Assembly (NCBI GenBank): GCA_020536535.1
Contig: JAHLWZ010000240.1
Coordinates: forward strand, 1-57,888
Reading direction: 5' to 3'
From: Pelomyxa schiedti
Lineage: Eukaryota > Protista > Evosea
Length of the DNA: 57,888 nt
Below, piece after piece: positions 22,801-28,085 of this stretch. Under the pieces are notes generated by a model, which worked only from the letters and a program-made list of their open reading frames with translations, did not search any database and had not been told where the DNA came from. The stretch's first letter is position 1. Every line of letters begins with the position of its first letter. A program made the translations under genes and the position numbers.

Positions 22801-25158
22801 TATTCACTTACAGAGATGGTTGGTTCTTTACCATAGTTGCCGTCATTTAGCTAACTTTAAATCCAGATTCTGATCACAGGTTACTCGAAATTGCTCTGCA
22901 ATTGGTTTTTTCCTTTGTGCACACCAACGATTTCTAACACTGCCGCAGATTGGTCTGAAGTTCAACGGGCACGTTGAAAGTGCCAAATCTGTGGCAATGC
23001 AAATCTTGTCGCTAGGCCAACCGCAGGGCACACCATCCAACACACCAACCTCTAATTCTTCCACTATTCAAGACAACATCAACCAAGTAAGTGCACTTCC
23101 TTTCCAAGAAATGGAAACAGTAGTACTGAATGCAATGAGGATTGTTGACAGGTATCTAACTTTTTTTTTCCCCGAGTACTCACCTGTGGTAGTATGGATG
23201 GCAAAACAGTTGATGTGACTGTCAAAGATAAATTCGGGAGGAACATGCTTCATTACGCAGCCATGAAAGGGTATCCCCATCACTTCACGTAAAAACCTAG
23301 AATTCAAAGTGCCCCAGGTATGTTGAGTTGGGGTCTTGGTGCCTCAAGAAAGGGGGAATAGCTGTTGTGAATACGAAAGACATCATGGGCAATGCCCCAC
23401 TCCACTATGCATGCTTCTATGCACGGACCCAGTTGTATGTGCCCAAATTCATCTTTTATGGATCTCAACGTTGCTTTTGTAGTACAAAACTCTTGCTTCA
23501 ACACAAAGCGGATTTGTCCCTCCAGAATTTAAGTAATTGCACGCCTTGTGACATGGCACAATTAGTTAGCAATGCCACAGTCCTCCCAGTGCCTCCACCG
23601 CTTCCACCGTTGCGACATCACCTTAAAAGAGCTTTCAGCTCCAAGACGGCACCCACAACACCACATAACTTGCCTCCAATATTTCCCCCACCAACACCAC
23701 TCACTTATACCAAGACCATGCCAAGTTCTACTTTACCTCTTCAACCTTTCACATCAGCCCAACCTGCCGCGATAAGGGCGGTCGCCCTACCCATCACCAA
23801 GGTGGGTGAATACAGAATTTCCATCGAATCTAAGCCAAAGAACGCGGAACTTCCAGTTGCCAACATAAAGCAATCGGGAGCCGTACCCGACAATCCCGAT
23901 TCCAGCATCGACCTCAAAATGAACATAACGCAAGAAAATGCAAACAAAGACACTACAATGCAGAAAGAGGAGAGCAGTGGCGTACAAGAGAAGAGCAACT
24001 CCCCTTCATTCTCCTTCTCGTTCAGCAAAAAGGATGATGAAAAAATGAAGGAAACAGATGCACCAAACCTCCCATCCAAAGACTTGTCTGCCCTTCCTAC
24101 TACAAAAGAGACTTCTAACCTCCAGCCCACCACTACTATTACCTCCTCAACAGAAACATTTTATACCACAGACACTCAGGTGACAGATGATACCACAGGC
24201 ACATCCACACTCAACTTTAACTTCACCCCACCATCACCTACGCAACGCTCCAACAAAGAAACAAAGAAACTGAAGCACAAAACCATATCCTTCAACAAAA
24301 GCTTCTACACCAAGAAACCATTCAATTTCCACAACCCATATGTAACACTTTGCACCTCACCTACCGCTGCTGACATCAGGCAAAAGCAAAAATCCAACAA
24401 TGAACAACAACGCCTCTCCAGCAACTTCAGCACCCACAACACACCCCCCAACTGCATTTCAGTCTCTCTTCCAGATGCCGACCCATTTTTGCATACAACA
24501 ACCCTGACTCTTCCTGCTGCGGAATCATGCATGGATACAGACACATACCATCACGACACGGAGAGCGGAGACAATCGCGGTAGCCCCGCCAATAGCGCTG
24601 CCACAATAGCATCTGAACACTCCATCAACCACGACTCAAGTCCTCTCACTGGAGACAACAGAAGGAGGAACCTTAGAAGTGCTTTCAGAGGGGGAGGCTG
24701 GTGGCACAGGCACGCACCAAAAGCCCTTTTGGTTGCCGGTATGTCTATTCCTCTTCGGTTTCTTGCTCACAGGTCTTCTTAGGACTTGGAATCGTTGGAG
24801 TTTGTGCTGTCCTAGGGCTTTTATTTGGTCCGGTTGGCTTTGATTGGAATGGTACTCACCACATTGGTACCAACATTCACTCTTCCCTCTGCATTCTAAC
24901 TGTACCACAGTCAACTCCTCCGCCAGCGTCGAGACCAGCTTCGGCGAGAACGTGGCCATATACTACACCCTGCTCTGTGCCCTATGCGTAACCTCCGTAG
25001 TTACCATGTCACTTGCCTTTGCATGGTTCACCTCGCGGCGTAAGCCCAGCGCCACAAGCGGCAAGCTGAGAGTGCTGGGCATGTCAGCGGTTATCTTTGG
25101 TGTGTTTGACCTGCTGTTCCTATCTCTCCTTCTCGCCGTGCTCTTTGCTGGACAGTGA
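19801..25158 (+). CDS. Spt23/Mga2-like membrane-bound transcription factor (Q-rich, DNA-binding domain, IPT/TIG, ankyrin, C-terminal TMs)
   Basis: CMGCVQRERR; IDFTSGEAIISLRIT|CYCRHHNEKVGF; IITDDHK; IPT KVVPNIGPIAGGIEVTLLGSGF...CWNATTIVCTLPP; SDHRLLEIALQ.IGLK; ankyrin GRNMLHYAAMKG and GNAPLHYAC. Confidence 0.88.
21971..22312. repeat. Exact 121-bp duplication flanking a gap (21971-22091 = 22192-22312); contig-overlap artefact
   Basis: Identical sequence on both sides of the N run; merging the copies restores the IITDDHK reading. Confidence 0.9.
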
Positions 25159-25361
25159 ACCAATGAAACACATCCTCCTCCTATACCGCACTGAGAGACG
25201 CGGGGGTGTATCATTGTTAAGTGAATTTTTCCCTTTCTATTTATTGTAAAAAGCAATAAAAGGTGTTGTCAGAAGAAAATTTATTGTTTCTTGGGTTTGT
25301 TTCAATTACAAAAAAAGTTGTTATTGGTTGCATTGTGTAATCCTCAATGTCATCTTGAAGT

Positions 25362-26041
25362 TTAAGTCCTCTCACCACGGAGCCTCCTGGCAAGCTGTAA
25401 GTCCTTTGGAAGGACTGTAGTCCTCCTGGCATCTGGCCCGAGTTAGGGTGTATTTTGGGGTGAAAACAGACTTACGGATTGCACAGAGGTTAGAATCTTC
25501 AAAGAGTCCTATGAATAAAAGGTAAGGTTTTTGCGCTATTCAATGGGGAGGGCCTACCAACAACGTAAGTTTCAGCAGCTTCCTGAAGAGCATTTACAGC
25601 CGCGGACTGGAACCGAAGATCACATTTGAAGTCTATCAGAGAGGGGAATAGAGTCAGAGTAGAACAAAACAGTAAAGTATACCTTGTGCAATCTCCCTTA
25701 CGAGTCGTTGGAAGGCCATCTTCCTTATCAAAAGCTCAGTAGACTTCTGCATCATCCTGATTTCGCGGAGTGCCACAGTCCCTTTTGTTAAGTTCCAAAT
25801 ATTATTATAAGCACTAACCACTAAAGAGATACCTGGGCGGAACCTATGCGGTTTCTTAACGCCACCGGCAGGTGCTGCCATAACGCGTGCTGCAGTAGAT
25901 TCAATGTGCTTTCGTGGTGCTATAACAAAATGAAGCAAAAAAAAACCAGTAAGTTTGTAAGTAAAAGGGGGAAAAAAACCGGAGGTAACGCATACCCTTC
26001 CCCCCAGTCGATTTACGTGCCGTTTGCTTGGTGCGTGCCAT
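25362..26041 (-). CDS. H3: Histone H3 variant (6 exons)
   Basis: Spliced [136 protein letters not shown]. Confidence 0.97.
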
Positions 26042-26244
26042 CTCGTGCCGTGTCCTTTGTCGTAGATCCGCTGCCCGCCCCTTGCGTCCGCTCGCTTTCT
26101 GTTTTTAAAAATTAAAATTTACGAGTGTAACGGGGGATTGATTGGATCTGGTATCTGTTGAAGCTGAAGTTGGTTTTTGGTTCTAGCCTGAAAACACCAT
26201 GGCTGGTTGAAAAGTTCCTTCAATGTCAGTGTCAAGTAGAAGTT

Positions 26245-26306
26245 CTAAGCCCTCTCACCACGGAGCCTCCTGGGCAGTTGTATGTCGGGCTATTCCTTCT
26301 GGCGTT
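26245..26306 (-). pseudogene. Remnant of a histone H3 3' end
   Basis: NARR-(deletion, frame change)-DIQLPRRLRGERA*; shares cctctcaccacggagcctcctgg with the intact H3 gene. Confidence 0.7.
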
Positions 26307-26487
26307 ACGTTGTCGGTTGGGTACTCTCCCTATCGAATAAATAATATTATCTCTAGAAAAGGAAGTGGTGCCTTCCATCCCCGCACTCCCTCTCATACAC
26401 CAATTTTCGAAAAAAAAAAGGAGAAAAGGGACAACAACGAAGAGGCAAGACTTTTTTGGTTGATCTACTGTCTCGTATCTGTTGTCC

Positions 26488-26927
26488 TCAGTCAGCGTTG
26501 GCAACATCATCATCCGAGTCGTCCCTGTGTGTGTTCAGTTGCTAAAGTGAAGCCAACCAACGCCACAACAACTGAAAGATACTAACCTTAGCTTATCATC
26601 GTCGACGTTCGCAGCGGCGCCGCCCTCGACGACTCTCTTGGCGTCCACCAGCACATCGTGGTCCCCATCGCCGCCGGTCCCTGCTCCTTCTCCTCTGTTG
26701 GTTGTTGTTGTTGTTGTGGTCGTGGTTTCTTGTGCTCGTGTGCCCTCGGGCGTCGTGATGGGCGGGGTGGGCAGCCGCGACAGCCCCAGCACAGAAGCAG
26801 ACGTCGTCGCGGGGTTCGCCTCGCGCCACGCTCGGTACGCTGCGTAGGCGCTCAGGGCCACGGCGCCACCACCAACGATCGCGCACGCCGCAACTCGCGC
26901 CCACTTGCCGTGCCCTTTGTCACTCAT
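26488..26927 (-). CDS. Small protein with N-terminal TM anchor and acidic/Thr-rich tail
   Basis: MSDKGHGKWARVAACAIVGGGAVALSAYAAYRAW...; one intron, last exon DDSDDDVANAD*. Confidence 0.6.
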
Positions 26928-26987
26928 TTCCGTAATGAAAGATCGTGATGATGAGTAGTATTGAAAACAAAAAAATGTTATTATGTT

Positions 26988-28085
26988 TCAAGACGATTTT
27001 TGCACAATTTGTAGGGGGAGTGATTGGGCCAAGGAGAGAAGCCAACACGAAGTTCCAGTGTTGTGGGTGGCATTGTGGCCCACATATATGCCGACAACAG
27101 GGTCTCCAGAGATGTCAAAGACTGGGATATTGACCCAGTGAAGCAGAGTCCGAACCCCACTCGAGGGTGTCAGGAGTGACCAGAAGCTGTCTCTACACGT
27201 ACCGCAAATCAGTAGTTCATCTTGATGGTTCCAGAACAGCGGCTTGTGTTCAGGAGCTACGTAGGTATTCCCCCAATCCCACCGCATGATCTCTGCTGCG
27301 CTAGTTGCGAGAGTTTGCTCGATAAGATGGTTCATCCAAATTGCTTTGCAGTCCTGTGCATGTACTTTGAGGATGTCATCAATAAAAAGGGAAATACCTC
27401 ATTTATGGCAACTATATATAACCGAGGTTCCAGGGGTATACTTGCAGGACGTAGGGACTCTTTGACTTCTGAGGGGGTACATGAAGGGAAAGGGGGTTGG
27501 TTACCTTTCCCATCCTGCATATTTACATTATAACCGCCAACAGGGATCCCCGTTGGCCCATTGGGGTCCAATGAATGAGTGGTAGTTTGCGGTTGTTGGT
27601 GGGTTGGTTCGACAGGCGGTGGAACGTAGTTAGGATACAGAATCAGGGTGTCACTCGTCCCAGTATCCTCCAAGGAATTACACAAGATTTCAAGGTCGCG
27701 TTGAAAAAATTCGTCGATTCGATCCGAAGTGGCTGTTCCACTGCTGTTTCGGCTTTAAGCGAACGAAAAGGGAAAAACCAAACCTTGTTTCGCTGATGCC
27801 CCTGGGTACAGGTGGTACTTGGGTTCGAAATTGGCGACTTTGATGACTCATTCCCTGATCTTGTCCTCACTTAGTCTCCAAAGGAAAGCCGGATGTGTAT
27901 GTACCTGGTTCTTCCGCTTTCGTATCAGCCTGCGTATTCGAAGCACCCATATCATTGTCATCGCCAGCATCGCTGGGTGATTTGGTGATTTCAACCGCGG
28001 AAACGCGAAGCGTAGCCGATTGATCGGCATCGCTGATCGGTTGGATTTGTTGATTTCTCGTAATGGAAGAAGAGTACCCTTGCAT
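26988..28085 (-). CDS. Hypothetical multi-exon protein with globular Trp/His/Cys-rich C-terminus
   Basis: Consecutive minus-strand ORFs separated by GT-AG segments; C-terminal exon IMRWDWGNTYVAPEHKPLFWNH... Confidence 0.5.

Follow-up and report, generated by a model that had tools for sequence, protein, structure and literature searches.

Contig JAHLWZ010000240.1 of the anaerobic amoeba Pelomyxa schiedti carries a gene for a histone H3 whose tail has valine and methionine in the places of K27 and S28. The initial annotation of this DNA (57,888 nucleotides, positions 1 to 57,888 of the forward strand, hereafter "the window") described the product as a variant unable to carry marks at either residue. 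It suggested that the variant could be immune to Polycomb in the manner of plant H3.15 or, more speculatively, that its hydrophobic pair could recall the PRC2 inhibitors K27M and EZHIP. Does the missing lysine reveal a device directed at Polycomb repression, or does it reflect a more general change in the H3 family of this organism? The gene is called C240 below, and the other H3 genes of the genome are designated in the same way.

An intact and transcribed H3 gene

The C240 gene occupies positions 25362-26041 on the minus strand and comprises six exons, whose 411 nt specify 136 residues and a TAA codon. Its five introns (76, 51, 50, 49 and 43 nt) all begin with GT and end with AG, and all are in phase 1. 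The features of the transcript are as follows.

26042-26053, minus strand: 5' UTR, at least 12 nt; the X3 RNA contig extends to 26053
25996-26041, minus strand: exon 1, ATG, residues 1-14 and the first base of A15; the X3 RNA contig joins 25996 to 25919
25833-25919, minus strand: exon 2, A15-G44, the variable tail segment with T23, V27 and M28; splice model and RNA
25683-25781, minus strand: exon 3, G44-D77, the alpha-N helix and the start of alpha-1, with M53, M54, M65 and A66; splice model and RNA
25558-25632, minus strand: exon 4, D77-G102, K79 kept, C80, AAVN at 87-90; splice model and RNA
25476-25508, minus strand: exon 5, G102-H113; splice model and RNA
25362-25432, minus strand: exon 6, H113-T135 and TAA, with R115 and with H113, D123 and L126 kept; splice model and RNA
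25276-25361, minus strand: 3' UTR, at least 86 nt, AATAAA at about 25285-25280; the X3 RNA contig extends to 25276

All five introns are skipped exactly as predicted in the Logan contigs of two single-cell RNA-seq runs (X3 and X4), and a single RNA contig of 511 nt spans 25276-26053 and hence the entire coding sequence. Transcription was read here from assembled contigs, which carry no expression levels. DNA run X1, from which the assembly probably derives, has no splice joints at the C240 introns. The five clean introns and the intact frame, from which function had been argued initially, are thus borne out by RNA from two runs. A search of positions 24000-27500 against Rfam returned neither a histone stem-loop nor any other RNA family.

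The spliced coding sequence served for translation, for local alignments with loci of this genome, for dN/dS estimates and for the tree. Its translation is identical to P0001, that is GenBank KAH3765019.1 ("histone H3 [Pelomyxa schiedti]"), a protein that matches the Pfam Histone family (PF00125) over residues 7-132 with an E value of 1.1e-38; in the genome scan, the PF00125 match falls on exon 3. C240 is therefore an intact, transcribed, correctly spliced and bona fide histone H3. As GenBank already lists the product, merely as "histone H3", the present work makes a modest addition, namely the variant character of the protein and its family context.

The surroundings of the gene contain a fragment of a second copy.

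26246-26303, minus strand: degenerate partial copy of the C240 last exon, reading ..DIQLPRRLRGERA up to a stop, about 200 bp upstream of the ATG

This segment aligns best to the last exon of C240 (50 of 58 aligned bases). A deficit of 10 nt breaks its frame, it has no splice acceptor, and no RNA contigs were found over it; a partial tandem duplication probably left it behind. Further upstream, at 26500-26960 on the minus strand, lies a small two-exon ORF of no obvious family that begins MSDKGHGKW and goes on to a hydrophobic helix and a stretch of threonines. On the other side of the gene, X3 and X4 contigs from a neighbouring transcript (25100-25254) depart from the genome at two points: two extra nucleotides follow 25201, GG in one of the runs and GT in the second, and A is replaced by G at 25213. 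Variation between alleles or between cells, within a 3' UTR, is the probable cause.

Departures from canonical H3

The tail exon of C240 aligns without gaps to residues 16-43 of H3.1, so that V stands at K27 and M at S28. Over residues 1-18 C240 does not differ from canonical H3, and the protein as a whole is collinear with the canonical 135-residue H3, its fold being free of any insertion. Against the canonical-type H3 P0035 the identity is 80% with no gap; against canonical H3s generally, it reaches only 78-80%. The initial reading of the tail as free of indels thus holds with respect to canonical H3. It does not hold with respect to C867, the most canonical H3 of this genome (135 aa), than which the C240 tail is one residue longer.

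The substitutions reported at the outset (K23T, K27V, S28M, R53M, Y54M, L65M, P66A, AAVN at 87-90 and K115R) are all present in the splice model and the alignments. Further changes are Y41F, T80C, S96A, A98T, L100V and T107S and, in the C-terminal part, V117T, I119V, M120L, I124L, I130L and A135T. Alignment likewise confirms that K4, K9, S10, K14, K18, K36 and K79 are kept, and K37 is retained with them. At the H3-H3' interface, H113, D123, L126 and C110 are retained as well. An identification with CenH3/CENP-A, discounted from the start, is rejected: such proteins have a divergent N-terminal tail and a lengthened loop 1, whereas C240 is canonical at tail residues 1-19 and its loop 1 is free of insertions.

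Relatives of C240 in other organisms

The protein search was made with the stop-free frame at 25657-25920 of the window, minus strand, which reads through exon 2, intron 2 (51 nt, left unspliced) and exon 3 and holds 60 of the 136 residues. Within a set of 5.8 billion proteins, the 8000 candidates sharing most words with this query were scored. The top match was C240's own product, P0001 (98 bits, a singleton cluster). All other matches listed carry the Pfam histone domain and score about 95 bits or less, and neither V27-M28 nor M53-M54 was seen in any of those inspected. As the query was partial and 8000 candidates were scored, diverged orthologues could hide among canonical H3s. Two degenerate-pattern scans of metagenome contigs, one of them for the variant tail, returned nothing; they say little, because only exact conservation of the peptide produces a match. 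Taken over the 5.8-billion-protein search and the metagenome pattern scans, no C240 orthologue was found outside P. schiedti.

Other departures at residue 27 were observed among the metagenome H3s. One 136-residue protein (P0096) reads AARMSAP and is thus a true natural K27M; two more of the same length (P0075 and P0107) read ASRLMGA, and a 79-residue fragment (P0028) reads AARMT. In the tree, the three full-length K27-substituted proteins group together as a clade (91/70).

Five H3 paralogues in the P. schiedti genome

The H3 family was searched with C240 exon 3 against the whole P. schiedti assembly (52,367,397 bases in 5337 contigs). The search identified six places, which resolve to five H3 genes (C867, C240, C226, C712 and C137), each with an intact frame. 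C867 encodes a canonical-like protein of 135 aa from a gene with three introns, on a very short branch (0.033). Its identity is 93% with P0123, which comes from metagenome data and falls in the cluster containing the Physarum polycephalum H3, and 90-91% with other ordinary H3s. C226 (L021; 137 aa) has all five intron positions in common with C240, and the two are sisters in the tree (UFboot 90, SH-aLRT 87) on long branches of 0.24 and 0.26, respectively. C712 (142 aa) and C137 (146 aa) make up a second pair (95/92), in which the tail intron is different and the central exon long. As judged from the tree, C240 is a member of a fast-evolving pair standing beside the slowly evolving, canonical-like C867.

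Two apparent additional copies were rejected. A duplicate of exon 2 in C226 (L021, 1068-1381) consists of identical sequence flanking runs of N, a scaffolding artefact; the "two" H3 loci on C137 (L023 and L024) likewise show identical sequence on both sides of N runs and represent one gene.

Synonymous divergence between paralogues exceeds 1.5, is saturated or is not computable, while dN ranges from 0.09 to 0.27; in the three pairs permitting calculation, dN/dS is 0.04-0.09. For C240, dN is 0.14-0.15 against both C226 and C867, with dN/dS of 0.09 and 0.04, respectively. Saturated dS combined with low dN indicates that the H3 paralogues are old duplicates under purifying selection. The initial view of C240 as a functional gene agrees with this result as well as with its transcription and splicing.

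These data bear on the possibility that C240 is a redundant duplicate in slow decay, transcribed and functionally neutral. Its long branch would fit such a history, as would its occurrence as a singleton cluster with no V27-M28 or M53-M54 orthologue in the protein search or the two metagenome scans, and the decayed last-exon copy just upstream. A decaying gene, however, would not be expected to preserve an intact frame of 136 codons with all five introns spliced in RNA, nor to combine saturated dS with the low dN and dN/dS values found against C226 and C867. Moreover, the residues critical for the nucleosome and tail positions 1-19 are unchanged in the protein despite synonymous turnover. We consider decay very unlikely and favor the reading of C240 as a selectively maintained variant.

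A tail segment that differs in every paralogue

Comparison of the five paralogues places the K27 substitution in a wider pattern. Residues 1-18 are the same in all of them save for S13 in C137, and a histidine follows in four of the five; this part of the tail is constant in the protein despite many synonymous differences. The residues from K36/K37 onwards are conserved as well, but C226 has Q at the K36 position. Between these two blocks (residues 20-35), every paralogue is different, both in sequence and in length. The intervening stretch is HIASKHAHKKAPAGGV in C867 and HIASKAAAQPSKPAASGI in C226, and the inserts of C712 and C137 are several residues longer. The C226 tail as a whole reads KHIASKAAAQPSKPAASGIQK; it lacks K27 and has Q-P where C240 has V-M, and the protein also carries W120 and V135.

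The motif ARKS at position 27 is absent from all five paralogues. Lysines at 27-28 are clear only in C867, and there the context is AHKK. Since the 20-35 stretch is variable throughout the family, the absence of K27 from C240 appears as one case of a family-wide loss of constraint. A Mastigamoeba H3 is reported to be about 94% identical to animal H3.3 (PMC2939574), and with so near-canonical a relative the decay of the K27 neighbourhood seems specific to a sub-lineage.

Polycomb machinery

The search for PRC2 used SET, CXC and VEFS profiles, applied exon by exon in six frames to the whole assembly. The SUZ12 VEFS box gave no candidates, and no match to the E(z) CXC domain passed, in the 52-Mb assembly. 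The SET profile identified 13 loci in the assembly, none of them E(z)-like by catalytic motifs and best PDB matches; EZH2 was absent from the PDB matches. Three of them (L025, L037 and L029) are SET1/KMT2-like by the same two measures, two (L026 and L028) are NSD/SETD2/ASH1-like, and two (L034 and L030) are tentatively EHMT2/SUV39-like. The remaining classified loci are SMYD-like, and one divergent SET locus (L033) had no PDB match. The chromodomain profile gave 44 matches genome-wide, many of which may be borne by retroelements.

Two considerations limit the weight of the negative results. The Pre-SET domain (PF05033) had no match in the assembly although SUV39/G9a-like SET pieces occur; this makes the assignment of L030 and L034 as K9 writers tentative, and it implies that the failure of a domain scan to find a match counts for little in a genome so rich in introns. 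Furthermore, the genome has 7.43 introns per gene, and the genome-derived proteome contains 81.9% complete BUSCOs (PMC8887013), so that short or diverged PRC2 domains could escape an exon-wise search (7.4 introns per gene, about 82% completeness). The scans agree with published surveys, in which E(z), ESC and Su(z)12 were all missing from the archamoeba Entamoeba histolytica and from Dictyostelium purpureum (PMC9018016). A protein of Mastigamoeba balamuthi stands among the significant SUZ12 hits aligned in supplementary file 73 of PMC10638273, and H3K27me2 is described as a repressive mark in Entamoeba by Foda and Singh (2015), in the terms in which PMC4712492 cites them. With moderate confidence, on the strength of these genome scans, we regard PRC2 as not detected in P. 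schiedti.

An undetectable PRC2 core, together with a 20-35 stretch free to vary, suggests that the loss of K27 from C240 reflects relaxed constraint across the lineage. The initial annotation had named just this situation, all H3 copies lacking K27 and PRC2 being absent, as one that would speak against a dedicated function. The picture obtained is essentially that one, with the qualifications that C867 has lysines at 27-28 and that PRC2 is undetected rather than demonstrably absent.

A role for C240 and C226 in evading a mark placed on K27 or K28 of C867 would offer a different account of the same data. In such a scheme, similar to that of H3.15, the mark would be laid down by an undetected PRC2 or by a SET enzyme other than PRC2, and incorporation of the variants would erase or block repression locally. 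The distribution of lysines is as expected, K27-K28 being present in C867 and absent from both C240 and C226, and C240 is expressed with its frame conserved. A repressive H3K27me2 in Entamoeba, an archamoeba without detectable E(z) (from the citation in PMC4712492), the SUZ12-like match in Mastigamoeba and the 44 chromodomain matches in the P. schiedti genome speak for it as well. Nevertheless, the scans of the assembly yielded neither an E(z)-like SET domain nor a CXC domain or VEFS box, and the ARKS context required by known K27 writers and readers is missing even in C867. In addition, variation of residues 20-35 in all paralogues is the pattern of relaxed constraint and not that of a targeted change at K27. 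We find evasion unlikely; the proposed Polycomb immunity of the H3.15 type loses its footing where no paralogue keeps ARKS27 and the enzyme goes undetected. Relaxed constraint remains the preferred explanation.

Even less can be said for a dominant inhibition of PRC2, in which V27-M28 would poison the E(z) active site in the way of K27M or EZHIP. C240 does have a hydrophobic pair in an AAR-x-x context, and the metagenome protein P0096 shows that a natural H3 of the K27M type exists. Such inhibition reportedly involves methionine (or isoleucine) at the position of the substrate lysine, in an R-K-S-like context, a result attributed to Lewis et al. in 2013. C240 resembles K27M and EZHIP in having a hydrophobic residue in place of K27 within an A-A-R context. 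It differs from them in that the lysine position is taken by valine and the methionine sits at 28, in that the E(z) target was not detected in the genome, and in that the sister gene C226 has Q-P, so that V-M is unconserved even within the pair. Inhibition of this kind appears extremely improbable, and the early comparison with K27M and EZHIP is not sustained.

Discussion

We estimate at roughly 0.7 the probability that C240 is a selectively maintained, lineage-specific H3 of the replacement type, in which the loss of K27 is part of a relaxation affecting the whole family. As far as can be judged from its sequence, the protein is most likely a partner of H4 and is incorporated into nucleosomes as a variant of the replacement type. 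The replacement type is suggested by the introns, by the AATAAA in the 3' UTR and by the failure to find a stem-loop; entry into nucleosomes is suggested by the intact histone fold and the conservation of H113, D123 and L126. The C240 tail would be open to marks at K4, K9/S10, K14 and K18, and the protein also to marks at K36 and K79; enzymes resembling SET1/KMT2 and NSD/SETD2 occur in the P. schiedti genome. Positions 23, 27 and 28 would not be modifiable. The loss of K27 would, under this interpretation, constitute no dedicated anti-Polycomb device.

The functional individuality of C240 is more probably a matter of the fold, where the changes include M53/M54, neighbours of K56 in the alpha-N helix where DNA enters and leaves; M65/A66 (P66 is lost in C226 too); C80; and AAVN at 87-90. 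The alpha-3 helix carries conservative changes (R115, T117, V119, L120, L124 and L130). The H3 87-90 patch steers the choice of chaperone in animals. Together, the changes in the fold would be predicted to shift nucleosome dynamics, the route of deposition, or both.

H3 variants of the H3.3 type have AAIG at 87-90 and are encoded by replication-independent, polyadenylated, intron-containing genes. C240 resembles them in its introns, in the AATAAA of its 3' UTR with no stem-loop found, and in A87 and A88. It departs from them at 89-90, where it has V-N in place of I-G, and in its identity of 78-80% to canonical H3s. The H3.3-like copy of P. schiedti is C867 (90-93%) rather than C240.

In functional terms, the nearest analogue is a plant variant. 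Deposition of Arabidopsis H3.15, in which K27 is replaced by histidine, removes H3K27me3 (Yan et al. 2020, in the summary given by PMC10426802). Like H3.15 and the sperm-specific H3.10, C240 is an intact and expressed paralogue with a canonical fold, a residue 27 that cannot be methylated and the other tail lysines kept. However, H3.15 acts against an active PRC2 and beside H3.1 and H3.3, which bear ARKS27, whereas in P. schiedti the PRC2 core is undetected and no paralogue has ARKS27. Since C240 groups with C226 (90/87) and has five intron positions in common with it, it originated within the lineage, independently of plant H3.15.

Another parallel is provided by the lineage-specific H3 families of protists, with three variants each in Entamoeba and Dictyostelium and many in ciliates (PMC2939574). 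As in those families, P. schiedti has several old paralogues that vary near modified lysines, with one canonical-like copy and others evolving faster. The difference is that residues 1-19 are nearly invariant in the five copies and only 20-35 are free to vary, length included. At the level of the family, and on the comparisons made here, C240 would be best described as a lineage-specific variant within a multi-variant protist H3 family.

The contrast between the free segment and its constant flanks allows one further interpretation. A K27-type mark may exist on the major H3, C867, with its lysines at 27-28; it would be comparable to the H3K27me2 of Entamoeba as this is reported in PMC4712492. 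The 20-35 stretch might then serve as a paralogue-specific "barcode" between the 1-19 and K36-K37 modules, chromatin containing C240 or C226 being refractory to methylation of the kind that a non-PRC2 enzyme places on K27/K28 of C867. If true, this would be escape from a repressive mark by means of variants, in a form independent of Polycomb. We hold such an arrangement to be quite unlikely and retain maintained function with family-wide relaxation of K27 as our interpretation.

The case of C240 calls for caution: an H3 without K27 should not be called Polycomb-immune until the rest of the family and the enzymes have been examined. No new kind of system emerges from the analysis. The H3 family of P. 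schiedti fits a connection between the loss of the writer and decay in its substrate motif, and the chromatin biology of Archamoebae gains a defined set of H3 variants.
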